From: Chara braunii
Taxonomy: Eukaryota; Plantae; Charophyceae
Direction of reading: 5' to 3'
DNA: 64,000 bases
Assembly: GCA_003427395.1 (NCBI GenBank)
Contig: BFEA01000027.1
Location: 838,550-902,549, forward strand
The notes under the pieces were generated by a model. That model saw nothing but the letters and a program-made list of their open reading frames with translations, was not told the origin of the DNA and did not search any database. Both the position numbers and the translations under genes were made by a program. Positions 940-37,820 of the stretch are shown here, piece after piece (the stretch's first letter is position 1; every line of letters starts with the position of its first letter).

Positions 940-3900
940 TGGGCGTCACAGCACAGCGCCACGCGGAGGAAATAGACCTACAATATCGATTACAACAACT
1001 CCAACAGCAAGAAGATGACACCAGTAGCGACGTTGCCCGTCTAACAGAACTGGCCAACAAAATACAAACATTGGAAACCCGGATCCTGGGTCATATCAAG
1101 CACCGATGGCAAGGAATCAGGATCCGTGGTAAGCTCCACCGACACAAAATGGAGGGTGCAATGGCTGAGAGATTTTTTAGGATGGCTAGAACAAAAGTAG
1201 GTCAAACAACTATTGAGGCCCTGGAGGAACCCAACCAACAACGAGGACCGTTGTATACCTCAACAACGGAATGTACAAAAATAGCAAGGGACTTCTATCA
1301 AGACCTCTTCACATCTGAATGTGGGGACATACCACTAACGTTGAGGCTGGCGGAAATTGAGAACTTTTTGCGCCCTCTCACTCAAACACTTACAGACCAG
1401 TAGAGAGAAGTCTTGGAGATGCCCCTAACGAAGGAGGAGATATGGACAACATTAATGCTCATGGAAGAGGAAAAGACCCCGGGCATCGACGGTCTGCCAA
1501 AGGAATTTTGGGAATCGATGTGGGGGACCATCTCCCAGAACTTAATGAACTATTACCGAGCAATGTGGGAGACGGGTCAAATGGGAGAACATAGGTCAAG
1601 GGGTCCTGACATTGCTGTACAAAAAAGGAGCAAGTTCAAACATGAGGAACTATAGACCCATCACCCTTCTCACAGTAGTTTACAAGATGGTGGTAAAGGC
1701 ACTGGACAAACGCATGGTTAAGGTAATGGTGGATATTATCCACCCCGACCAGATCGGATTCATAAACGGCAGAAATATCCACGATAATATATTCCTGGTC
1801 AATGAGATGATTAAACTTGCACGACAATCTAAACACAATGCGGCAATTATTTTCATTGACTTCAAAAAAGCCTATGACCATGTTGACTGGACCTTTTTGG
1901 ACAAATGCCTGAAAAAACTAAACTTTGGACCTCATTTCAGGCGATGGGTGGAAATATTACACAAAAATGCTACAACCAGAGTCATGGTCAATCACAACCT
2001 TGCACCACCCATCTCTCTCCAGAGGTCCGTCCGACAAGGAGACCCGATAGCACATTTTCTGTTTGTGATAGTAATGGAAGCCTTGGCGGCGAATCTACAA
2101 GCACATAAAGACATCAAGAGAATCCAAGTCGCTTCAATCTCGGAGGAAGCAATACCGGTATGTTCGCTGTTCGATAATGACCTAACCCTGATGGTGGATG
2201 CGTCACACACATCGATGGCTGAAGTGCAACACATGATGGAAAAATTTTGCACACTCTCAGACATAAGAGTCAACTGGTGGAATAAAACCCTGGGATGGTG
2301 GATTCACCATCTAGGATTTCGGCCTCCGGAGCAGCCACGGGTTAAATGGGTACCCAACGAGGCCCCCATCCGGATCCTTGGGATTTCACTAACAGTAAAT
2401 GGTAGACCATCAGTGAACAATGAAGGACTGCTCAAATCACCGCTGGAAAAATTGATACAATGGAAGGACAAACACACTTCATTGATGGGGCGCTCCTTGG
2501 TGATAAACAATGTGGTGCTTGCTTCGCTGTGGTACAGATCGGTCATTTGGGCTCTAGATAAAACAGCCCTCCGCCCATTGCAACGATAGATAGCCGCATT
2601 CTTATGGAGGGGAGATCACAAAAAATACAAGGTGAGCAGTAGGGTTGCATGTCAATCCATAATCCAACCAAAAGTCAAAGAGCGTGTGGGCATAATTGAC
2701 CCAGCAATACAAACCAAAGCTTTGGCGTTACAATGGATCAAACGACTGTTGTTTTGCCCTGGCATTCCATGGAAGGGGCTGACCCTGGAACAAATTGCAC
2801 GACTGGCCCCCGAAACAACATCGGATAGCAGTTCTCTAACATGGTTAAAAAATAGAGGTTGGCCAATACCGAGAGGGCACTTCAGCCAACATAACCTGAT
2901 CTCCCCAAGGGATCTGGCGGGAAAGGATCTGCGAAAAGACCCCTTCTGACCATCTCTTCTGAGGACATGGAGGAACCTCCCTCTGCCTGACAAAACCCAA
3001 TCGGAGTGATGGGAGGAGGTATTACGACAACCCCTTTTTTAGAACAAGAGAACTGACAGGAGGGGACAGGTCCTTCACTGTACGGATTCCCCCTGACGTG
3101 TATAGGTGAAAAGGGAGTACTCATAATAAACGATATCTAGGACACAACCACAATGGATTGGATCGACTGGGACCTGCTTAAACAACAAATGAGACATAGC
3201 CATAGATCGAAAGTTACACTCGAGGTCATAATAGAGTGGATTCCCCTGAGCTGCTGGAAAATCCTCAAAAAGGGACCCGTTTTGCAGGAATCCGACTGAG
3301 TGCAAATCCCGAGCAGTCAGGGACAGGTAGGCAATGTGGTGTGTTGCAGTCCCAAAGGTCCGGTGGTCGTTGATATATTTAAATTGGGCAGTGACAACAT
3401 CTTACATAGGCCCGTTCCCGAAGAAAGAAGATTTTTCCAAAACAAGGAACCGTCGCGAATCAGAGTGTAGGAAAATAGAGATAAATGGATGGCCTTCCTC
3501 CCAAGCACCCCGATCACTCAACTGTCGTTAGACCCAATGGAGTGGACATGGACTTTTCCCTCCGGAAGGGGCAAGACATGTATCAAAAAATTACACAGTA
3601 TAACAGTCAAATCAACATACAGATTACTCTGTCCCGCGACTAATCTACAGGACCAGGTTGAGGCTAGATGGATGAAGCACCTGAACATTAGCAAGGAATC
3701 ACTTCGGAGAGTCAAATGGTTCCAACTAGTTAAGATGAAACCTGCGAAACTGGCCTCCCTCCAACGGCAGGTAGAACATCGTTGCCTACCAATGAATGAC
3801 TGGCTAATAGACAAGATATCCTTGGAACAAAGTGGGCGGGCCCTGCCTTGGTGCAAACTTTGCTCTGATTCCTTCCCATCCAGGAAAAAGCCAGAAACAA

Positions 3901-17517: not shown

Positions 17518-18424
17518 GAAACAATAAAGAAAACGAGAAGTACGAAGGAAGGTGAAGCTCGCGTGCAATGATAGGTGGCCTTGGGAGACCCGTGGCAATT
17601 TTGCCGATGCAACGTTTTTTGGATATAATGTGCTTCATCGGGAAACTGCTGCACAGCTTGTGGTTGACACACACTTGTAGCTGTTGATGAGCAAGTCAGG
17701 ATTTCATATCCCAAATGGTAAGGAAAAATGCCCTGATCTATTCATGGAGAGCAGCATGTGCTGGGAACCAGGCACAGCATTCCATAAGTACGACAAGGCA
17801 AGTTCATTGACATAAAGAGGCAGAATTGAGACCACACTACAGCATTCACATGCAGTTATTGCTCACTGGTCATGAGCTTAAATCCTGAATGGTACACACA
17901 TGTAGTTTTGATAACCAGGTCATGAGCTAAAATCCTGATCACAGACGTTGCACAGCGCTATCTGTGATTTTTCCTAGCGCCACTTCCTCGGCACTGCCTT
18001 GGGGACAGTAGACAGCATATCAAAGGAAACTGTGGCCAAGGGATGGCAAGCCCTAAAATGCCTGAGATAATGAAGTTTTCCCTGCCCAACCTCAGGAGAA
18101 TTGAGGCCTGGGATAAAGTTCCGTGCAGCCTCTGCTCGGGAACAGACTGATTACGTACGCGAATGGCGCTACCTTCCCTTTCGAACAGTCCCCTTGGCCC
18201 TCTGCACAAACATGCGATTGTTGCATTATAGAGGTATGGGACTAGGAAACAAACGAATGGCTGTTCACCCAGTACCCAGCATTCCGATGAAGAGCCCCGA
18301 GGAATTCCCAGACATGTTCCCCCCGGCAGCCACAACCATCGTAGAAAGACAATGGTTTGGTCAGCAGTAAGGGATGTCGGACCCAGTCTTACTTAGCTCG
18401 TCAGACCAGCAGTCATCGCAAGAG

Positions 18425-19740
18425 CGTAGGTATAAATCAGCTATCTGGGCATTAGACAAAAATGCCCTTCACCCCTTGCAGCGTCAGATAGCTGCCTTTC
18501 CGTGGAGAGGAAATCATGAGAAGCGCAACATGATCAGCAGAGTGGTTTGGCAATCCATAATCCAACCCAAATCGAAAGGTGGATTAGGCATTATCGATCC
18601 TTCGATACAAACTAAAGCACTAGCGATACTATGGCTCAAACGTCTACTTTTCAATCTAGAATCCCCGTGGAGGGGGTTAGCTCTGGAACATATCACCCGC
18701 CTAGCACCACAAACAGTGGAGGGGAGTTACCCGTTGATGTGGCTGGAAAATAGGGGATGGCCCATCTCAAGAGGAGGTGCGCAGCAACAGCAGCGTGATC
18801 CCCTCCCCGACTCACCCAGTCAGGCAACAAGGGCCAACCTGCGCAATGACCCCTTTTGGCCTGACCTTATGAAAATATGGAGAAGTCTTCCCCTACCGGA
18901 TAGAACTCCACCAGAGAGATGGGAAGAGATGGCGTGACAACCCCTTTTTGGTAACAGATGGGTAGCAGACTCGAGGGGACAGACCCTCCATTGCATGGAT
19001 TCCCCATGACAAGGCTGGGGCAGGCGAGGAATAACAAGGATAAAAGACATATGGGATACTAAAAAGAGAAACTAGATTGACCCGGGCCAGCTAAGAGAGA
19101 GACTACGCTACTGCCATCGACCGGAGGAAGCGTTGGAAGCTATAATAGAAAAGATCCCCCTAGCCCGGTGGAGAATCCTCAGGAAAGGCCCCACCCTACA
19201 GGAATCGGACTGGGTGACATTGAGGGATTGACCAAGTGAGGTGCGCAACATCATCTACTGCGAGCCCGACGGATCAATAAGAGTGAACCTCTTCCAAATA
19301 GGTTGGAATAACGTCCTTCAAAGAACCTCTCCGGTATGCTAAAAGGAGGAACTTTTCATAATTAGTGTGCTCCATGAAAGAGAGCAATGGATCGCCTACC
19401 TCCCCCAAGTCTCGGTCCACCAACTCGCCCTAGACCCGTTAGAATGAGAATGGACAACACCAGCGGGGAAAGGCAGAAAATTCAGTACATCATTATATGG
19501 CCTAACAATAAAATCGACCTACAGGCTCCTTAAGACGAGAATAAACCTTCGTGACCGGGTGGAGACATGTTGGATGAACCCCTTAAACATAGACAAGGAC
19601 AAGCTAAGAGACATAAGGTGGCTCAAAACAATCAAAGAAAAAACAGCAAAATTTGCCTCACTGCGATGGCAGATCGAGCACCGCTGCCTACCGACAAATG
19701 ACTGGCTGATAGACAAAACGAACCTGGAACAGAGAGGGCA
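18425..19740 (+). mobile_element. LINE ORF2 post-RT fragment, cut off at 19740
   Basis: YKSAIWALDK..WQSIIQPKSKGGLGIIDP..WQIEHRCLPTNDWLIDK, homologous to 2530-3840. Homology ends abruptly at LEQRG. Confidence 0.88.
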
Positions 19741-20910
19741 TGTGATGAGCGAGGATCCGTACTCGGCGGTTTCCCGTACCCCTAAGGGAAAATCCCGCAT
19801 GGAACCCCAAAGTACGAATTCAAAATAATGGGAAAAACGGTGCTTAATTTTTCGTTTTGTTTCCTTTTTCTTTTGTTTAAGAGGGGCGGAGTAGAAAATA
19901 TAATTCGGGTCTTGCGTGGCCGGTTAACGGTCGCGCGAAAGAATTCAAGAAACGGTTGGGAATTAGCATGAGTAGGAATTTTGAATTTTTTCACGTGCGG
20001 CTGTTTTCGAATTTTTGCGTGCCGTGTGAACCCATCCTCCCGCTCGGCATTCCCGCGCCATCTTCCCTTCTTGCTATGTATCTCCCTTTTGCATGTTTCT
20101 TCGACTTCCCTTTGAGCGAAGTCTGATCCACTCCTCCTCCTTTCCCTGCTAATGATTGGTTGTCTGGTTGGGTGATCGGCGCAATGTGGTGGTCGCGGGA
20201 AGCGCACCCCACTTGGACGACCACCCCAATCACGCAGACCATTCGACTCGCCTCCTTTGACTTTTCTGGAAACTCGGCCCCTCTTCTGTCCTGCTCATCT
20301 ACACCCCGTGCTTTGTGCAGCCTCTCCGCCGCCTTCTGCGCTATAAATTCTCACAAACTCTTCCTCTCACCCTCTTGGATATCGACTGTAAGTTGCGCAA
20401 GCTATGCACGAAGCCCGCGGTGCCGGAAAGGCTCGACGTGCACTGTGGTGGGCGGAGTGACGGCGGGTGGCGGAGTTAGCAGTGGACTTGGGGGTCAAAC
20501 AGTCGGAGGGGCGCAGCGGTGGTGGAGATCAGATGTCGACAGCGGCAGGGCCTTGTGGCTATGGTTGCCGGTGGTCTTGACGGATTGGTTGCCCGAGTGG
20601 CCAATCATGAGAATTCCGTATTTTTAAAGACAAAGTTTTTTCTCTATTGCTGCTTTGTCCCTGTGTGATGTGTGCATGACTCCAAAGGTTGGGTAGTCTG
20701 TTATGCATGTCGGGTATGACAATCTATGGATGTTAAAGGTTTCAGTGAGGGCTCTCTGGGTATGCATGTATGTATGCGCCTCTGTGCCTAATGAGCGGAA
20801 GAATTGAGTGTCGATTGCTTGCATAAGGGTATGAATGCATTGGTTCCCGTCTCCCTTCCTTTTTTATCAATCGCGCGAGCGTGTGTGTGATACGCGCCTA
20901 CCTCCTTTCC

Positions 20911-20987
<77 letters not shown>

Positions 20988-21000
20988 GTGCTGGTCGGGA
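19741..21000. mobile_element. LTR-like non-coding segment starting TGTGATG, inserted in the LINE
   Basis: TG start exactly at the LINE breakpoint, TATA-like ctataaa at ~20341, (CT)n at 20914-20985. The right boundary is uncertain. Confidence 0.5.
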
Positions 21001-21774
21001 CCCCAAGAGGAGGCGGATACTCCTGGAGAGATCGATCACCCGCGTTCTCACAAGGCGGTCGACCTCTCTATATGCACCACGGGTGCCCGACACCGCGGTC
21101 CGGGTGAGGACACAAAGAAGAGACGGAGAAAGGGAGCTGGGCGCATCCGTCTTCGGCGGTATTCGTTAATCTTTGCATGGAGTCAGGTTTTCTCCCGACG
21201 GACGGAATCGTGGGCCGTGGCCCAAGCTTGGACCTTGGCTCAGAGCGTCGCAGCGCGCCTCCGCCCTTCCCGATCGCAAACGACGATGGCATATACTGCG
21301 ATGCGGACGTGCGAAGGTTGCTGCGGCGCACTGAGCCAATCCACCTTTACAACTCGACTCAGGTGCGCCACATAGGCGGGAGTGGGTTTGTGTTGATTGA
21401 GCGGTTTGCGTCGCCGCCTTTAATTAAGTCGTACATCGACCTCACGGTGTTGCCCTAGTCTGCTGCGCACGCCACCTGGCAACCACAGTTTAATTGTCAT
21501 TGGTGTCGCCAGGGAGACTCGTGCTTGTGGCGACGGTTGGTCGTGGGGTACAAAGGGGTTACCCGATTCCCCGAACTCTCCCGTAATGCGGGTGCATTCC
21601 ACGCCCATTTTCGAACTTGGGTTCCATCGACATGTCTGACCCCGTGCCACGCCGTCCCCACAGACTCGACGAGTCCGACAACGATGAGTCCGACAACCAA
21701 CGATGAGTCCGAAAACGACACCTGAACCTGCTTCCGGGGCCTCTTCCCCAAGGGCCGCGCGAACCCTGTGTTGC

Positions 21775-22809
21775 CAACCCATTAGACTGAGAGACATGGG
21801 GAGCAGCGTGTCGGAGAGCAACGCCACGCCGCGTCAGTAATTCCTCTACTTCGGCCTTGAATTCGGACCCGTTGTCAGTTAGGATCTCCTCTCTATCTAG
21901 ATGGGTATTGAGGAATCGGTCGATATATGTAGCTATTTCGGAGGCTTTACGTGTCTTACAGGGATAAACTTCGATATACTTTGAGAAGTAATCAATCAAC
22001 ACCAAGAGAATAGAATATTCACAACGGTTGGGGCAAGGTGATACCTCAATATCTGTTGTGTCCATACTGACTCGCTGGGAAGGACGTTCTACCTCCATGG
22101 GGACTACTATGTTTGGGCCACGAAGGGGCGCACGATCGGCAACACAGACTAGACAGTTAGCGACCACGTGCTTCACGTCGTCGCAGATATTATACCAGAA
22201 CCATCGATTTTGGTCGATAGTTGCTTCGGTGACACGTATCGTGAAATGGGCAGTTTGTTCCTCGTGCACCGATCTGGTCTAGTCATATCGCTGGAAGGGA
22301 TGGGGAACCGTCAACCACAACCCCGATCCGTCTGTTTTGCGCTTTTCTAAATCGCCGTTGATCCTTAGATAATCTTGGGACCTCTCAGTTGCCCAACTCC
22401 TGTCGTGATTAGTGAGATGGTCCAGTGGTGTGCCTAGTAATTTAGCCAATAATATTTTATCCATCCATACTTCAGCCCTTCGGTATTTTTCGTCGTATTC
22501 GGGGTCGTCAGTCCTGGCGGCCTCGAATCAAACTTCTGTGGGGAGCTTATCCGTTCGACACAGAGGGCATTTCCATGCCTTAGTACTCGTTTGATATCGA
22601 ATACATGTGCCATGTGCGAGATTAACACACGTGGCGCAGTCCACCCAGTCAGTGAACCCCGATTCAACGGGATAGCAGTCTACCCCATAAACCCGTGAAA
22701 TGCACGTGCAAAAATAACAGAATTTGTCCGGAAGATCGGCGAAAAATTCCAAATGCGGAGGAGGAGGGGAATTGATGGGGTGAGGAGCAGTAGAAGAAGG
22801 GGTCATCAT
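21775..22809 (-). pseudogene. Gypsy copy A: PHD finger + integrase (frameshifted, C-terminus deleted)
   Basis: CYFC..WVDCATC..HGTC..WKCPLC; H..H..CLVC; MDT..LIDYFSKY..TDNGSEF..SNGLA, after which homology to copy B is lost. Confidence 0.9.
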
Positions 22810-22856
22810 GGTTTGGGGAAAGAAGAGAGAGAGAGAGAGAGAGAGCTCGTGTCCAC

Positions 22857-27318: not shown

Positions 27319-27331
27319 GGCTCCGATACCA
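27319..27331 (-). promoter_or_regulatory. Primer-binding site for initiator tRNA-Met
   Basis: Minus strand TGGTATCGGAGCC vs canonical TGGTATCAGAGCC. It lies upstream of gag, exactly where homology to the LTR end at 40960 stops. Confidence 0.8.
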
Positions 27332-27800
27332 ACCTCACGGCCTGCGCTGCCTTCCAATCGGAGCGTTGCGGTTCGTGGAAGGGGCCCGGGAAAGGCAACG
27401 ATGATGGGGTGTGCCAAGGATTTTTGGAAAATTGAGTGTGGGGACACAGACGAAACTGAAATCCCCCGTGTTGGTCCGACTGTAGTAAGAAGAAGATTCG
27501 TCGCCGCACGGGTTTTAAGGGAGAAAAAAGCGCGCACGGGACTCGCAACTATGAAAAATTCAATCCAAAAAGTATCGTTGGACTTCCCAACGAGTCGTCA
27601 CCCTTTGTTTTGCGTGAAAGGGGACGGGTACACACGTGGTATCTCGTTTTCGGATGAGGTCGCGTTGTTGGGCGGCCAAAGCCAGTTGGCCACCCGAAAT
27701 GAGACAATTTGAAGAGTCGATTGATCAGGCACGACCGTGTTAAGGGACGAGCGGTAAAAAACAGGACACCTAGGTCGACCCTGTTTTTCGACCCGTCTCT
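27332..27800 (-). mobile_element. 3' part of the 5' LTR of Gypsy copy A
   Basis: Reverse complement of 27332-27670 aligns with 40630-40960 (tcggaccaacacgggggatttcagtttcgt..tccaaaaatccttggcacacccca). Confidence 0.72.
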
Positions 27801-28231: not shown

Positions 28232-29079
28232 ATTAAGAGTGTGGAGAGCGGGGTGCGACGATTGACTATTTTGCGGTGTATGGACCTGCTCATACGGGGT
28301 TTTTCTAAGTGAGGGTTTTTCTAAGTGAGGGTTTTTCTAGTCGCCATCGGGCCTCACTTGTCCGTCGCGTTATGGGCTCCGGTCCGGGATCACGACGGTC
28401 ACCAGTCCGGCGCAGGTACGGTTCATGGATGCGGCTCGTCGGTGTGGTTTCCTGGTACGTACGGTTCATTGGCACGGTGCATTGGTACTTGGTGTGGATC
28501 ATGGTGGGGTTCATTTGGATAGTCCATTGCAACAGGTCCAACCCACTCTTGTCGAGCCTCGGTTGGAGATCCATACCTGGATCAGATTACTGCGGACTGT
28601 GTGGAAGAAACAACCACTGGGCCAAGAGCATCTACGGTACTGGGACTGCAGTGGATTGTGCTGCGGCCACATGCCCTATATTGACACTGGGATTGCAGCG
28701 GACGGGGACTGCCGGTATGGCGGTTGTGCCAGGCCTGGATCTGCACCACAAGAATTGTTGTTGGACCTGTTTTTGGACATACTGGTACTAGACCAGAGGT
28801 CTGTTCACCGGGCCTGGATCTGTAGTCTCGGCCAACAGCTGGTACCGGCCGGTACCGGCCGGTACCCCTTCCTTTTCGGGCATGGGCCTGCCTGTGCAGG
28901 TGCCAGCTCGACTGACAACTATACAAGCAAGGGTTTTGACTTTGGGAAGGGACCGCGCGCATGGCGTACGCCGCCCACGGGGAAGGGAAGAGAACGAAGC
29001 ATGGAGGACATGAGAGGGGGAGATGCGCATTAGGGAGACGACGGCGCGCAAGGTGTGCGCCGCCCACCAGGGTGGCACC

Positions 29080-29290
29080 AAGAGAGACAACGAGAGAGGA
29101 CTGCGGGCAGAGAGAGACAACGAGAGAGAGAGAGAGTGCACAGTGAGAGAGAAAGAGTATGCGTAGTGAGAGAGAGAGAGAGTGCACAGTGAGAGAGAGT
29201 GTGCGCAGTGAGAGAGAGAGAGAGTGCATAGTAAGAGAGAGAGAGAGAGCAGTGAGAGAGAGAGAGAGTGCGCAGTGAGAGAGAGAGCAG
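29080..29290. repeat. GA-rich minisatellite (gagagagagtgcRcagt units)
   Basis: Direct inspection. Confidence 0.9.
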
Positions 29291-29859
29291 CACTAAGGGT
29301 TGTGGAATTGTGAGCAGCACGGGGAAGTTGTGCGTGCATTTGTGATGCTCTATTGATCTAACGTACACCTGAGGTAGAGAGACCAAGAGAAGGAGAGTAA
29401 CGGGCACGCGATCATGCAAAACATGAAGCTAGTAAGAGGGCGATGAGTTGGGGAGATTTAGTCGAGCAAAGAAAAATGAGCCTTGGGAGAGTAAGAGACT
29501 GTGAGCAGTGGTAGAGAGGGAAAGAGAGAGAGTGAGGAGAGAGACATAGAGAAAGAGAAAGAGAAAGCGAAAAGCTGACCGTCTAAGAGCTGGAGAGAGC
29601 GTGAGGAGGCGCGCGAGTCCAGATGTGTATTTTCTAAATTAAAAAAAAAAAAAAAAAAACTCTTTAGTAGCAATAGTAGCCAGGTTCATCCCAGTCAATA
29701 GGCGACAATGAGGTTGAGTGAAAGAGATCACGTGCGCTAGGTAAAGAGATGAGTAGAGTGAGTCAAGAAGAGAGAGTGAGAACGTATGCCAGAGAATGGA
29801 AATGGTGATAAGAACATGAGCCGCCACTCATGAGAGAGAAAAAAAAGGGGAATCATCTT

Positions 29860-30105: not shown

Positions 30106-30291
30106 GCATATAAAAAAATATAAAGATATAATAATAATAAGAATACAATGATGTATCTTTCCATGATTTAGCTGTAGACTCCTCCCTATCCGAATACGGT
30201 AGTGAACAGGATCTGAACTCTCCTTTGATCACACACACCAGTGGGGGAAGGCCTTGCCACTCACGCACACACACACACACACACACACACT

Positions 30292-30333
<42 letters not shown>

Positions 30334-31309
30334 AGTCAATTGAAGATCACGGCAGTAACAGACAACTTACACACATATACACAGAAGTTGAACCTGTCCT
30401 CACAAATCGGCCCGATTTATTCGCAGGCCATTCAAGACCAGTGACAGTGGAGCAAAGTTTATCATTCTGTATGAGACTGCAGCACCAAGGCAGCTAGATC
30501 CATTAAAGAATATACAAGATAGCATCAAGGTATGAACTCGGGTCTATATTCCAACAGTGCAGAGCTCGTGGGTACAAGTGGACTACTTGGAGGGCCTGCA
30601 AAGGGGAAGAGGTAAGAGAAAGAGCACAAAATGGTGCAGACTCAAACGAATTCAACAGAGAGAGCGTTTCTCCCATCGCCTTGCAGGCGGAGTTGCAGTC
30701 CGCTAAAGCTGGCTCTCTCTCATATCCACCCCTTCATCTACTCATATGTGATCACCCTTCTGCCCAGAGGGCGTTGAGGGGGAGCAACCCGCAAAAGATC
30801 AAAGCATAAAGTTCTCAAACAAAAGCTCAAAACATGAGAGGGTTTTTTGTGCACTGCTCCGACACGATGACGTTTTATTGGTTACTACTCTCGGCTGCTA
30901 AGTCCAGTTTAAGATCGGAATTCATTTGCTCAAGGGGGCCTTCAAAACGGAGACTCCGACCGTTCAAATTTTCAAACAATCAAGATTTAGACATAATGGT
31001 GATGATTTCAAAACGAACATTGATTCTGAAAATGCGGCAAAGCCATTCGTAATTTGTGACACTGACTTTGCTTGGGTTAAACTGCAGAATTACCGCAGGG
31101 TTTTGGTCGAGCCTTATTCTTACCCTGGTCAGGGCCAAGTGGCTGGTTTGCCCATCTTGTTAAGTGCATGTTGCTCCGACAGTTCAAGTTGACCTACGAT
31201 CAATTTGTGGAAGACGAAGTGCGATCATACCTGTGCAAATCCGAGACCCTCCACGGGAGACCCTACGAGTGAATCTCTGGCAGAGTGAATCTCTGGCCAC
31301 TACTAAGTA

Positions 31310-34300
31310 GTCTGAATGGATGAGTAACCTGATCCAAATGCAGGCGGCTCACATGGAACGGATGGAGCAGATAATGAGCTGGCTCATTAAGCCTAACCCG
31401 GCTCCGGCCCGACCTACCCCTGCATCGTTTCCGCTCTTACCTGCTCCACCTGCTCCAGGATTCGCCCCCCTGTTTCCCCTTCTAGCTAATCCGGCAGGAA
31501 AGATCGAGTGTTTCAACTGCAAACAGCCCGGGCATTTCGCCCGAGACTGTCCGCAGCCAAAACGTAATCAGCCCCCCCCTGCTGCGGCCCCAGTCGCCCT
31601 TAATCACGGACGAGTGGCCGCTCTGATGTACACGGACCAGGGAGGAGAGGTCGTAGCATACGCTCCAGAACAGCCTTCCCCTTCGAAGACAATGGCGTCG
31701 ACATCAGGGGCCTCTTCCTCTGACGCTGCTGACGTGGTCGATCCTCTCGAGTATTTCCATCTTGTCGGAATGATCGGAGCGATCCGATCGGCCCAGGATG
31801 ATCTCGAATGGGTCGATCGCGAATCCAATCCCGGACCGCAGTTTCGGACAGGAGATATTGATGTGTTAAAAACACTCAAGCAATTAGATATTCGTGTACC
31901 TATCCCAGTAGGACATCTGCTCACCATATCTGAAGCGGCGAACGATAAACTTCTACAACATTGCTAGAAGAATCAAAAGCGCTTCACCTATCAGCGCATA
32001 CAACGGATGTTGAAGAAGAAGGAAGGAGGTGAGGAAGTTGCACCCCTCGAGCCAGATATAAAAGAACCTGAACCCGAAGCCGTACGCGTAGCCGCCATCT
32101 CTTTAGCAGAAAAGGATCACTTTGTACGAGCTCGACCAGTACTATGGAAAAGTGCGGAATGTGACTGCGAAGTTTGGGGTAAGCCGTTTAACGCCCTCAT
32201 CGACACAGGGTCTTCTGAAGTAGCCATAACATTGGAGACTGTTAAAAAGACGGGACGACTTGGATCCATTCTTCCTCAATCAGGCAAAGACAACTATGTC
32301 TCTGCCGACGAGGAAGTAATGAACATTGTAGGCGTTATCAAGAACGTAGTTGTAAAAGTGGGACGAGTACACGTTCTTGTTAACGCATGTGTAATAGATG
32401 TACGTTCCTACCCTGTGTTGTTGGGATTACCTTGGGCAATGGCGGTAGGCGCACGACTGCATTTCGATTCGAAACAACTGGTGCTCACACAAACTGGGGG
32501 AAAACCTCAGACTGTTCCCTTGCGGGTTTCCACCCGAACGATAAAACGGGTTTCCAACTCACCCCAAATAGGGATGATCCGAGGCATTGATCCCGAGCAA
32601 TGCTTCCCCTTGCGCCTCGGGGAGGGAATCAGGGAACGAGAATACGAAGAAGAGATGCCCAGTAAAGAGGAATGGAAACATCTGGTCAAACTTTTCGAAC
32701 ATGAAACCCCCGAAAAATTTCGAGTGTGCCCCAACATCGCTCGAAGCTTCCACGTGGATTCCGAAGACAGTACATTCACACCTCTAACAACCCAGGTCAG
32801 TCCTTTTGTCCTCCTTGGGGAACCCATATTACAAGTCTCCGATCTGGCTGATGATTTGGAACCCCCTTGCACCTTGTACGAGGGAGCTTTTTCCTTACGA
32901 ACGCGTTATCAGCAAACGGAACAGTATTTGGACGTTTCTGTTTTCCCACCCCGATCATTGCTAACAACAGGAGCCATCATCGCCTTGATTAAACAAGATG
33001 CGGAAGCACCGGTAAGTGATGTTCCGAATCTAATGCAAGAAATGACGGATCTAACAGGACTAACTGTGGAACCGACTTCGGTTGATTCAGAGACTGATGC
33101 TGAAACTAAAGAAACGGAGATGATCAGCCCCGCTGAGTCCGACGTGATAGCAACTGTCTTTTTTGTTCGCACCAGTAGTTCCGTTTTCTCTACTATCCAT
33201 GAGCGGCGGGAACGGCCACTTGATTGGATCGATATGCCCCTTAATATGTCCGGGGAATCAACGATCCCCCTCCCGAGTCACGTTCCCACGGAATTTCGGA
33301 AGTCGCTAATCTGTGTATTGAATGGTTATGCAGCTGTGCTGAGTATGCATGACAATGATATTGGGTTAACTAATGTAATTGAACATGTCATTCTCACGGG
33401 AAGTCATCCACCCATTAGCTACGCTCCCTACCGATACTCGTCAGCTCAACGAGCGGCCGCCTTTCAGCGGATTAAGGAATTCGAAGCTAATGGATGGATC
33501 GAACCCGCTATAGGACCGTGGTCTTTTCCTGTAGTGATAGTACGCAAGAAGGCTGGGGGGATTCACATTTGCATTGATTATCGAAAGCTGAATGAGATCA
33601 CGATTAAAGATGTGTATCCCCTCCCCCGGATTGATGAGTTATTGGATGCGATTGGGAGTGCTCGATTTTTCAGCAAGTTTGATGTTCGCCATGCGTTCCA
33701 TCATCTTTTTGTCCGAGAGGAAGATCGACCAAAAACAGCGTTCGTGCTTTTCGAGGGCACGTGGCAATGGATTCCATGTCCAATGGGTATATGCAATGCT
33801 CCTGCAACTTTTCAGCGAGCCATGAACATGGTTTTTCATAATTTCGTATGAAAGACTCGTTTGGCTTAGAGCATCATCAACTACTGCGTGATTGTGTACA
33901 TGGATGACATCCTAGTGTATTCGAGTTCTTATGAGGGACACGTGCAACACATCGAATGGGCAATGCATGTGTTACGAGATGCAGGTTTCAAGGTGGCGCT
34001 TGAGAAGTGTCAGTTTTTCCTCACCACCATTTATTTCCTAGGGCACGTGGTGACAGACAAGGGACTCCAACCGGAACCGCAGAAGGTGGCAGCTGTCACG
34101 GACGCGCCAGTGCCTACCACTATCACGCAAGTTCGCGCCTTTCTGGGCCTAACTTCGTATTAAAGAAGATTTATCAAGGGCTTCGCGGCAATTGCGGGAC
34201 CCCTCACAAATCTCCTGCGCAAGGAGCAGTCGTTGATCTGGACGCCGGAGTGCGATCAAGCGTTTTTCAAACTCAAAGTTGCGCTCATTTCGGCTCGAGT

Positions 34301-34793
34301 CCTTATAAGACTGGATCCCAAAAAACCTTTTGTTCTAATCACCGACTGGCAGCCAGAGGCAATTTCGGCAATCCTTGCCCAAGTGGGACCAAGCGGACTC
34401 GAGAGTGTGGTGGAGTATGCGTCCAAATCAGTACCCGCCTGCAAGCGCAACTACGCCGCTCCGACGGGAGAATGCTATGCGGCTCTCTGGGGAATCATTC
34501 ACTTTCGTGCTTACCTGTATGGGCATAAGTTCACCCTGGTGACTGATCATGAGCCTCTGTTGGCTCTGAAGAAATCGAAGGATTACTCGGGCATGATTGG
34601 GCGATGGGCAACGGTACTCCAGAGCATGGACTTTGGCATCCGCCATTGGAAGCATGAGAGACACGGAAACGCAGACGGACGGTTACACAGGCCTAAGAAA
34701 GTTCTGAAAAGTGAGTAGGCGATCCCGTGGAACGAACCCGAGGAGAAGATTGGACCTCGGTACGACCAAGTGGAGATTTTGTCGAAGCAGTAA
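31310..34793 (+). mobile_element. Ty3/Gypsy copy B: gag (3' part)-protease-RT-RNase H, one frame with in-frame stops
   Basis: CFNCKQPGHFARDC, ALIDTGSS, CIDYRKLN..YPLPRIDELLD, YMDDILV, TDWQ..PTGECYA..TDH..HGNADG. Ends VEILSKQ* at 34791-34793. Confidence 0.96.
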
Positions 34794-34853
34794 GTGACAC
34801 GAGGACTAATTTGCCTCTCCCCAATTCAGTCTCGTCTCTTCCCCTCTATCATC

Positions 34854-36587
34854 ATGACTACTCCGCCTGCCTTCACAACCCCTTCTTCTCCTACTAATTC
34901 TGCCCCGCTTACTTCCTCAGCTTTCTTTGCCACCCTCCCCGATAAATTCTGTTATTTTTGCACGTGCATTGCACGGGTTTATGGGGTCGACTGTCATCCC
35001 TTCGAAACTGGGTTTGTCGATTGGGTAGAATGTGCCACGTGTGTCAATCGTGCGCACGGGGCCTGTGTACGATATCGAACGAATAGCAAGGAATGGAAGT
35101 GCCCCCTCTGTAGAACGAACAAGCTCCCCACGGAGGTTCGATTCGAGGCCGCCCGTACGGACGGCCCTGAATACGACGAAACATACCGACGAGCGGAGGT
35201 CTGGACAAATAAAATTTTATTGGCAAAATTAATGGGGCTATCATTGGGTCACCTCACCAAACACGACAGATGTAGGGCAACCGAGAGATCTCGGGATTAT
35301 CGATGGATCAACGGTCATTTGGAAAAGCGTAAAATTGACGGATCGGGTTCGTGGTTGACGGTTCCTCATCCATTCCAGAGATATGATTGGATCCGATCTG
35401 CTCATGAGGAACAAGCTGCTCATTTTGCGATACGAGTCACGGAGGCAACTGTAGAACAAAACCGATGGTTCTGGTCGAATAAACGAGATGATGTCAGATA
35501 CATTGTCACTAATTGTCCGGTCTATGCCGCTGATCGCGCCCCCATACGGGGACCAAACACGATCGTACCAACGGAAGTAGAGCGTACTTTCCAGTGAGTC
35601 AGTATGGACACGATTGATATTGACGTGCCACCTGGCCCAAACCGCTGTGAATATTCTATTTTATTAGTATTAATTGACCACTTTTCCAAATATACCGAAG
35701 TATATCCCTGTAAGACTCGAAAGGCCGCAGAAATAGCCACGTACATCGAACGGTTCCTCTATACCCATCTAGATACGAAAGAAATTCTAACCGACAATGG
35801 ATCTGAATTTAAAGGTAAGGTAGAAGAACTACTGGCGCGAAGGGGCGTCACGCTCCGACATACGGCACCCCACGTGTCCCAGTTGAACGGGTTGGCCGAG
35901 AATGCCAACCGTATGGTTAAGACCCCCCTTCGCAGGAACTTAGCGGCACACGATGCGTGTCCTTGGCCCGAAATCGTATGTCAGATCGTCGGGATCCACC
36001 GGGCCACTACTCACGAGTCTACGGGGTTCACCCCCTTTCAGCTTCGAACTAATAGCCTCCCCTGTGTCGATTACCGGGGTAACTCATAAATTGCCGAAGC
36101 AGGGGGTAGAGACACGCGTGCGGCCCTCAAAGCCAAGGCCAAGAGGTACGCCGACTTAATGGAACGGGCCGTTCCGAAGCTAGCCCGAAAAAGGCAAGGG
36201 ATGACCGAACTGGCCCACGGTAGACAGATCTGTAGTTATAAGGCTTGGAACGGGAATGCTGGGCCCCAATACCAATATAAATTTGGGGACCTAGTGCAGG
36301 TGCGTAAATGTGCACGAGACCGGAAACTCGCTCCCAAATTCTCTGGCTGTTTTCGCGTTGTCGAGCTCAGACCCAACGGCGCTAACACGGTGCGCATTGC
36401 GCCTGAGGCTAGCGCCAGTCGTAGCTCCGTCCCCATCGTGCGACATACCTCCTACCTCCGTCTCCTTCCTCCTTCCGATCTTCCTCCCTCTTCTCCTTTG
36501 GAAAGCGAGGAAAACAACGACGATCTAACCCTCTCTCCTCTTTCTCCCTCCTCCTGTCCCTCGTACTCCTCTCCGACCTCGCCATGA
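34854..36587 (+). pseudogene. Gypsy copy B: PHD finger + HHCC + DDE integrase + GPY/F-like tail
   Basis: PHD at 34950-35111 (CYFC..WVECATC..HGAC..WKCPLC); MDT..IDHFSKY..TDNGSEF..NGLAENAN; KLAPKFSGCFRV. Confidence 0.92.
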
Positions 36588-37006
36588 GTTTTATCACGGA
36601 GCGGGTTCTTGACTTACAGCTGCGGCAGCCACGTGGCTACATCTCTGAAATCCGGCAAGTTTGTCACCCTTGGCTCAATACGGACCTCCGCCGGTCGATG
36701 CGATTCTTCTGCGACGAAGGTATCTATGTCGCCGCTGCGTTTCGGATAGAAGGAAGCCCTCACGCGATAGTGTTCGCAGAGGTTACTGCAGTTCATCGAC
36801 GAGCGGGTCCCAGAACGAGCCACGTCACCACAGCGGTGGGATTCACCGGTGACATCAGCTCGGTCAACCCGCAGAGGCATACCGAGATCTTGGGCTCGCT
36901 GCGCGAGTGGACGGAGCAAGTCTCCAACGTGTGGCAGCACGTCCTCGCTCGAGAAGGATATAACATCATTCCGATCTCTGCATCGGACCTTGACGGCATT
37001 CGCTGA
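36584..37006 (+). CDS. Additional 140-aa ORF 3' of integrase, unknown function
   Basis: ATG overlaps the integrase stop (ATGA). The ORF is uninterrupted and not low-complexity. Confidence 0.5.
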   Translation: MSFITERVLDLQLRQPRGYISEIRQVCHPWLNTDLRRSMRFFCDEGIYVAAAFRIEGSPHAIVFAEVTAVHRRAGPRTSHVTTAVGFTGDISSVNPQRHTEILGSLREWTEQVSNVWQHVLAREGYNIIPISASDLDGIR

Positions 37007-37062
37007 GCACCGCACGAGCTACCAGTTGTGATTCCAAACCTCGTTCCCTTCCTTCATCCCCA

Positions 37063-37820
37063 ATGAACCACGCCAATCTTCTCGCTCCTCTCTCTATCTT
37101 TGGTCTTCCCTCTCTCTTCCCGACCTTCTGGCAATCCGATCTGCACCCTTCTCTCTCCTTCTCGTTCGAACCCCTTTCGGTCCCTCTTATCAATCCTGGA
37201 CATTGGCAGCTGTGGCGCGAAACTTTTGAGGAATTGTCTTTCTGTCTGGCCCGAGTACAAGTGAAGTGGACGGGCACTGTCGAGCACCCCACGTGGATCG
37301 AGAGTCTGGAGCTGCTAATCATACAAGGTTGGAGGACTTACACGGAAGGAGATCTTATTGGATTCCTCTTTGGATTGGTACAACCGGGTCGCCGTCAATT
37401 AATTGCACAGGAGCTCATCGCACCGATCGTACAATTGGCGGACAATTTCTCGCCCAACATCTACTTTCAAAGTGACGACAGTCCTGCTCCGTACATTTTC
37501 GAGCGATCTTTGGACCCGTACCTTCAGTGGACTTCGTGCTTGGAGGGACGAGGATACGCTACCATCGCGGCAGGAGTATCTGAAGCCGTACGAGATCACC
37601 CCTTACGCCTTCTACCTGAGGGCAGGAGAAGTGGTGATCGACGACGACGACAACGAAGAAGAAGACAACGACGAGGAAACATCGAGGGAGGGAAGCCATA
37701 GTGAACATAGTAAGGGCGAGCTAAGTGAGAAGGAAGAGAAAGAAAAAGGAATTGGATCCGAGTGGGAAGCCCCGCCGGCGGAAGCGACGCGCACGGAATC
37801 GGAAGCAGAGATCTTGCCAT
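37063..37820 (+). CDS. Second additional 3' ORF, probably frameshifted near 37545 into an acidic tail
   Basis: ORF 37063-37701 has a globular-looking N-terminal part. The alternative frame continues EDTLPSRQEYL..DDDDNEEEDNDEE. Confidence 0.45.

Follow-up and report, generated by a model that had tools for sequence, protein, structure and literature searches.

The Ty3/Gypsy family analysed here, from the streptophyte alga Chara braunii, carries a C4HC3 zinc finger attached to its integrase, and this finger is a conserved module under purifying selection. The reading that we favour, with a probability of roughly 55%, is that it is a functional PHD-type finger that forms the integrase N-terminus in a Chara-lineage Gypsy family, tethers the integrase to chromatin and biases insertion.

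Two degraded Gypsy copies with a finger ahead of the integrase

The window, i.e. the whole 64-kb stretch of C. braunii DNA that was analysed, contains two collinear, degraded Ty3/Gypsy copies in opposite orientation, copy A on the plus strand and copy B on the minus strand, with ~73-77% DNA identity. Pfam searches with the ORF pieces of copy A gave the domain order gag with a CCHC knuckle, protease (PR), reverse transcriptase (RT), RNase H and integrase, and copy B is collinear. This agrees with a preliminary description of the sequence, which had recognised a Ty3/Gypsy pol. The features are as follows.

31320-34718, plus strand: upstream part of copy A with gag including the CCHC knuckle, aspartic protease, RT and RNase H (Pfam zf-CCHC, Asp_protease, RVT_1, RT_RNaseH)
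31320-31967, plus strand: gag with CCHC knuckle, copy A
32007-34163, plus strand: protease and RT, copy A
34233-34718, plus strand: RNase H, copy A
34791-34793, plus strand: TAA that ends the PR-RT-RNase H frame (after ...EILSKQ in copy A and in its close copies L008-L010)
34794-36587, plus strand: finger-integrase region, copy A
34854-36587, plus strand: PHD-integrase reading frame of copy A, from the conserved ATG (ORF list; Met-Thr-Thr-Pro start in copy A and L008-L010)
34950-35111, plus strand: C4HC3 PHD-like zinc finger of copy A, first to last ligand codon (regular expression; Pfam PHD E=0.0077)
35112-35378, plus strand: conserved linker from finger to HHCC, an N-terminal extension of integrase (conserved in Chara copies and Gypsy-DNMT polyproteins)
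35379-35531, plus strand: integrase HHCC zinc-binding domain, second Cys replaced by Tyr (Pfam Integrase_H2C2 E=2.4e-5, residues 196-246; alignment to copy B)
35604-36089, plus strand: integrase catalytic core, rve (Pfam rve E=7.2e-10; ORF after the Integrase_H2C2 ORF)
36159-36587, plus strand: integrase C-terminal region (faint SH3_Tf2-1 and MLVIN_C matches only)
~26900 down to 21757, minus strand: whole extent of copy B, cut off inside the integrase core
22558-22719, minus strand: C4HC3 PHD-like zinc finger of copy B (regular expression; eight ligands intact)
21757-22845, minus strand: PHD-integrase region of copy B, cut off inside rve, with two in-frame stops (tblastn)

All six frames of the window were searched for stop-free matches to the regular expression C-x2-C-x8-30-C-x2-4-C-x4-5-H-x2-C-x8-46-C-x2-C. 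Exactly two were found, 34950-35111 (+) and 22558-22719 (-), which are the places where a C4HC3 motif had been described before in both Gypsy copies, and 100 first-order Markov simulations of the window yielded no match. Both fingers share the spacing C-x2-C-x23-C-x2-C-x4-H-x2-C-x11-C-x2-C with W-x-C ahead of ligand 7, and each is flanked, within its degraded copy, by RNase H on one side and the integrase HHCC on the other. They differ from each other at 13 of 54 residues and at none of the ligands, so that the preliminary description was right in stating that all eight ligands are intact despite other substitutions. Its estimate of about 100 residues between finger and HHCC was also accurate: in the ORF 34794-35597, 98 residues separate the last finger Cys (residue 106) from the first His of HHCC (residue 204).

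The HMMER search of copy A matched Integrase_H2C2 and rve, while the PHD expected from the preliminary description stayed below the cut-off. Neither 36159-36587 nor three ORFs downstream of it matched Chromo in Pfam, and the C. braunii homologues P0003 and P0004 did not match it either, in keeping with the earlier remark that a chromodomain is not seen. Two more sense ORFs, which have no Pfam match, follow the integrase at 36584-37701 (+); by eye, they show an unscored likeness to the C-terminal parts of the C. braunii models P0001, P0004 and P0013.

Copies A and B are both dead. In copy A, in-frame stops occur at 34716 and 35595 in addition to the conserved pol stop (34791); the PHD-integrase frame is interrupted at 35595-35597 and 36087-36089, and a Tyr stands in place of the second Cys of the HHCC domain. 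The finger-integrase region of copy B is 69% identical to that of copy A over 260 residues (tblastn), and its rve match stops at residue 103. Repeat search and self-BLAST revealed no intact LTR pair in the window. The sole LTR-like match is an inverted one of 160 nt (27330-27489 versus 40961-40805, 84% identity), whose two arms are placed as a 5′ LTR for copy B and a 3′ LTR for copy A would be, and an N gap (38642-39627) breaks the 3′ side of copy A. Both Gypsy copies are flanked by GA/CT-rich microsatellite arrays (29076-29308, 20880-21000 and 30260-30340), the first of which is a GA-rich tandem array with a 23-nt period. Elsewhere in the window, 2531-3097 and 18429-19010 (ORF 18374-18937) are two diverged copies, 66% identical, of what by eye appears to be the C-terminal part of a non-LTR retrotransposon ORF2.

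For the RT, dozens of C. braunii gene models show up to 89% identity, compared with at most 49% for the nearest RTs from outside Chara; Chromo occurs in none of the 120 best matches listed. A HMMER search with the finger-integrase ORF against 1.84 billion representatives gave 37 matches, with C. braunii models as the best ones; the seven that were looked up are C. braunii or metagenome records, so that a close tie to chlorophyte elements was not apparent. The 267-residue ORF had no match in a word-index search, in which the relative P0014 retrieved two close relatives only, and a scan of metagenome contigs with the finger-integrase alignment gave 52 pattern matches, none of which was confirmed. 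In a DNA run from the same organism, ~19,000 contig pieces were at least 90% alike to copy A on 5.9 kb, which shows how highly repeated this family is.

The order RT, RNase H, finger, integrase was also found in the C. braunii sequences L001, L003, L004 and L008-L010. Beyond copies A and B there are subfamilies formed by L001 and L004 and by L003 and L005, together with the close copies of A (L008-L010). The metagenome contig L002, which is ~31-33% identical, has the same order, and two further contigs of its family, L006 and L007, have an upstream ORF followed by the finger ORF. Every Chara genomic copy that was read through the PHD-integrase frame (A, B, L003, L004, L005, L008-L010) has a stop, a frameshift or a lost ligand, while L001 was examined for the finger alone. 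Several of the C. braunii gene models among the matches are transposon chimeras or fragments. In one model of 1843 residues (P0007, GBG87853.1), a Gypsy RT-RNase H-integrase appears to be embedded in unrelated sequence, and by eye its flanks resemble a host gene.

The reading frame of the integrase

The stop that ends the PR-RT-RNase H frame has an equivalent in copy B, after ...EILLKD. The conserved pol TAA sits within CAGTAAGTG (34716-34856; L008:8440-8640, L009:8554-8760, L010:9241-9440). It is followed by a variable pyrimidine-rich spacer and then by a conserved ATG (34854-34856 in copy A), which lies ~30 codons ahead of the first finger Cys and starts Met-Thr-Thr-Pro in copy A and L008-L010 and Met-Thr-Pro in copy B. 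The metagenome proteins P0046 and P0032 begin with a Met just ahead of the finger. Taken together, the conserved stop, the conserved ATG and the Met starts place the finger at the N-terminus of the integrase's own frame, and judging from these sequence features the integrase seems to be a separate ORF.

Relative to RNase H, seven copies have the finger in frame +1, two have it in frame 0 and two in frame -1, a variation that a non-coding spacer fits. The same distribution disfavours a single programmed frameshift, for which the combination of spacer and ATG is the better substitute. At the pol stop there is an overlapping GTAAGT, with a pyrimidine tract and an AG further downstream. An intron between RNase H and the finger was nevertheless rejected as a general answer, because excision of 34790-34920 or of 34790-34829 leaves the frame unrestored, in the metagenome family there is not enough space for one, and no RNA read with the joint was present at the low depth available.

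Of three poly(A) RNA runs, one has reads in each of the element's 30 bins, with the first mate mostly on the minus strand. In that run, 390 of the 443 reads, at low depth, are 90-95% alike and therefore stem from sibling copies. The copy in the window is itself essentially silent. In several of the sibling-copy reads a base is absent at 36086-36088 (5 of 14 and 3 of 14), and copy A may thus hold a private one-base insertion beside the stop of the rve ORF.

PHD-like features and the RING alternative

From ligand spacing and sequence, the finger is a predicted cross-brace two-zinc finger of PHD-like type with presumptive zinc binding, and the assignment to the PHD class is probable. The choice of PHD over RING as the subtype is one that we infer, and a C4HC3 RING variant is the live alternative. 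Scores that bear on this choice are weak in either direction.

With Pfam PHD (PF00628), copy A gave E=0.0077 and 16.7 bits, against a gathering cut-off of 24, and copy B gave E=0.54; no member of alignment A3, which is described below, reached the gathering score. The zf-4CXXC_R1 profile scored about equally (E=0.0025-0.015), also below threshold. A profile search of the PDB had the PHD of PHF7 on top (E=0.0037), followed by ING1/2, ASH1L, MLL3, KAT6A, YNG2 and other PHDs. Comparison by hhalign with four PHDs from related elements, which are confirmed by Pfam at E 1e-9 to 1e-11, gave a probability of 62% (E=7.8e-5), and every ligand is in register across the 50 aligned columns. Among ESM clusters, the closest neighbours are those of PHDs (score 0.81), which serves as a lead only.

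AF2 models were made of the window finger and of the finger of P0014, with moderate pLDDT values of 66 and 68. Foldseek matched the P0014 model to PHD fingers in nearly all cases, at weak E values of 0.2-1.8, and VIA-align related it to the PHDs of TAF3, Pygo and VIM1 (Z 3.4). For the window model, Foldseek returned PHDs mixed with RINGs, and in the wide VIA-align and Atlas shape searches C4HC3 RING variants were in the lead (RING-H2, RINGv, Nse1, Slx1). No fold match was significant in these searches, the best values being E=0.04 in Foldseek, Z 4.5 and TM ~0.5. The finger thus looks like the PHD proposed in the preliminary description by ligand spacing, sub-threshold HMM and profile matches and fold lists dominated by PHDs, but no PHD HMM passes its threshold; the shape searches do not tell PHDs and C4HC3 RING variants apart, PHDs dominating for P0014 and the window model being split, with RING variants ahead in the wide searches.

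A finger of the Slx1, Nse1, RINGv or PHF7-module type would not read a histone tail; it would bring an E2 enzyme, or else a particular host protein, to the integrase. We regard this as rather unlikely, although several results are compatible with it: the wide VIA-align search of the window model was led by RING-H2 EL5, RNF4, Nse1 and Slx1 (Z 3.6-4.5) and the Atlas shape search by RINGv, zf-RING_2, SLX1_C and APC11 (TM ~0.5), RINGs stand among the PHDs in the Foldseek list, and PHF7, the best PDB match by sequence, is an E3 ligase. The ligand pattern points the other way. C-x2-C-x4-H-x2-C together with a Trp two residues ahead of ligand 7 suits a PHD, while the spacing of RINGv is C-x-C-x7-H. 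Furthermore, the profile matches by sequence are almost all PHDs, and PHDs are found almost exclusively with the P0014 model.

In PHDs that read H3K4me3, a Trp usually precedes the His ligand and forms part of the methyl-K4 cage. This Trp is absent in all family members of A3, which makes a canonical methyl-K4 cage unlikely.

Constraint, possible roles and known systems

Alignment A3 comprises seven sequences with 24-71% identity, i.e. the window finger together with C. braunii and metagenome relatives. Within the finger, every ligand except one is invariant, as is the Trp two positions ahead of Cys7; the exception, the eighth ligand, is lost solely in a dead copy. A Leu ahead of the first Cys and a Thr-Glu right after the finger are the other invariant columns. 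The full C4HC3 spacing is present in A, B, L001, L009, L010, L002, P0046 and P0032/P0038 (the proteins of L006 and L007). Nei-Gojobori estimates of dN/dS were made by segment:

Finger: A versus B 0.106; A versus L008, L009 and L010 0.03-0.09
Linker: A versus B 0.128; A versus L008, L009 and L010 0.25-0.41
HHCC: A versus B 0.075; A versus L008, L009 and L010 0.11-0.18

The finger values are 0.03-0.13 overall and are the lowest of any segment among the close copies compared. The spacer ahead of the finger is under far weaker constraint (dN 0.52 for A versus B). Low dN/dS and conservation together show that the finger was maintained during the active life of the lineages, and neutral evolution of the segment, a possibility raised in the preliminary description, is rejected at dN/dS 0.03-0.13. 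Dead copies have lost ligands (Cys to Phe in L003, Cys or His to Tyr in L004 and L005, Cys to Trp in L008), as is expected once selection ends.

In this family, the PR-RT-RNase H frame ends at the conserved stop, and a second frame, opened by the conserved ATG, encodes the finger, the conserved linker, HHCC, the DDE core and the C-terminal domain. As both lie in one separate frame, the finger travels with the integrase. Its most likely role would be to tether the integrase and the cDNA complex to chromatin, leading to a bias of insertion sites. A histone tail is the probable partner, although the lack of the cage Trp that normally precedes the His ligand makes methylated H3K4 an improbable one. 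From the opposite end of the protein, the finger may thus do what the C-terminal chromodomain does in chromoviruses. Histone binding and integration targeting are what we infer for the finger, and chromatin-guided integration appears reasonable by analogy. Precedents are chromodomains, by which integration is directed (Gao et al. 2008, cited in a passage of PMC6673714), and the PHD-bearing Gypsy-7a_cRei with the excess of intergenic insertions that is described below.

The strong constraint would also suit an essential part of the catalytic complex. The finger could be a structural or nucleic acid-binding extension of the integrase N-terminus, of the retroviral N-terminal-extension type or akin to the CDCA7-like 4CXXC DNA binder, which acts in intasome assembly or cDNA end binding and not in site choice. 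Its position directly before the conserved linker and HHCC and the zf-4CXXC_R1 match (E=0.0025-0.015) are in line with such a function. However, that match is below threshold and covers part of the profile, most Gypsy integrases function without such a domain, and Gypsy-DNMT elements have linker and HHCC without a finger at this place, their PHD being C-terminal instead. We therefore consider this explanation quite unlikely.

It is very unlikely that the finger acts after or apart from integration, e.g. by hindering silencing by the host or, via chromatin binding, by boosting the element's transcription. The passages cited for transposon-borne PHDs in PMC9940879 and PMC8557442 speak of chromatin remodelling and not of targeting, and related elements bear a DNA methyltransferase, i.e. 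an epigenetic effector (PMC5890265). Yet the finger is in the integrase frame and adjoins the DNA-joining domains, and a separate, released protein is without support. Lastly, that the finger is a chance Cys-rich stretch or a decaying relic without function, as the death of all window copies and the absence of a Pfam call might suggest, has practically no probability left and is already refuted by the tests of selection and conservation, as the pattern occurs in 0 of 100 simulated windows, the ligands are invariant across lineages that are ~30% identical, and dN/dS is 0.03-0.13.

The architecture is not new in kind and opens no new category. The preliminary description knew of no described Gypsy clade with a PHD ahead of integrase; however, Gypsy-7a_cRei of Chlamydomonas has been published with the order RH, PHD, INT, and PHD has been called a common accessory domain of C. 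reinhardtii transposons (PMC8557442). According to the legend of Fig. 6A and the accompanying text (Craig et al. 2022, PMC9940879), the full order of Gypsy-7a_cRei is GAG, PROT, RT, RH, PHD, INT. The same text gives intergenic insertion as 2.6 times more frequent than expected, and its authors discuss a possible part in insertion-site choice. As far as the legend gives the order, this element and the Chara family are both green-lineage Gypsy LTR elements with a PHD between RNase H and integrase, a likeness of published domain order. As presented in that source, Gypsy-7a_cRei is a chlorophyte element that is active in the laboratory and has its PHD, recognised by the authors, within one Gag-Pol polyprotein, whereas Chara is a streptophyte, its finger is below the Pfam threshold, and its finger-integrase frame follows a conserved stop.

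According to a preprint (10.1101/2021.11.30.470311), RT and integrase domains of retrotransposons are often joined to PHD or Chromo, no other reader domains are fused as frequently with domains of transposons, and Chromo-Gypsy elements have expanded in C. braunii. Despite the great abundance of the family in the C. braunii genome, a survey that looks by domain for transposon-captured chromatin readers would probably overlook the Chara finger, as its Pfam score is below threshold. Our literature search found no paper on the Chara family. The present analysis adds a Chara (streptophyte) lineage to the green-algal Gypsy elements with a PHD-type finger by the integrase, and the selection tests place the finger among the best-kept parts of the N-terminal region of the integrase protein.

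A more far-reaching scenario is possible, but we hold it to be doubtful. A streptophyte-alga Gypsy lineage would have swapped C-terminal chromodomain targeting for a highly diverged N-terminal PHD, on an integrase in its own frame after a conserved pol stop; the PHD would have been acquired independently of the Chlamydomonas PHD-Gypsy and would read a mark other than methylated H3K4, which would explain the spread of very many copies in the ~2-Gb Chara genome.

The nearest detectable relatives of linker and HHCC outside the finger-bearing family are Gypsy-DNMT polyproteins (P0019, P0021, P0033), which are PHD-carrying Gypsy elements as well. These distant polyproteins match query residues ~130-250. 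A C-5 cytosine methyltransferase lies between RNase H and integrase in the metagenome Gypsy polyproteins P0019, P0021, P0027, P0029, P0033 and P0037, several of which have a canonical PHD after the integrase core. The Gypsy-DNMT elements thus differ from the Chara family in two respects: a cytosine methyltransferase occupies the RNase H-integrase junction where the Chara family has the finger, and the PHD, canonical by Pfam (1e-9 to 1e-11), follows the integrase core, whereas the Chara finger precedes the integrase. They are of the kind of KnitGypsy-Dnmt3 from Klebsormidium (PMC5890265).

More distant parallels exist. The PHD of CR1/L2 ORF1 is likewise an accessory domain of a mobile element, but it belongs to a non-LTR ORF1 protein. 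REM1 of Chlamydomonas was reportedly described by Perez-Alegre et al. in 2005. Like the Chara family, it is a green-algal LTR element, and passages of PMC6673714 and PMC8557442 cite it as PHD-bearing. Ginger1 transposases also join a Gypsy-like integrase to a PHD (PMC2836005); unlike the Chara family, Ginger1 is a cut-and-paste DNA transposon, and its PHD is C-terminal.

Chromoviruses such as MAGGY and Tf1 resemble the Chara family in having a domain of the histone-reader type on the integrase, a property that is presumptive for Chara, and for the chromodomain targeting to marked chromatin has been shown. They differ in that their domain is a C-terminal chromodomain, whereas the Chara family has a PHD-like finger at the opposite end of the integrase and no chromodomain. 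If the finger guides integration, it could naturally be compared with the chromodomain Gypsy families, which have likewise expanded in Chara.
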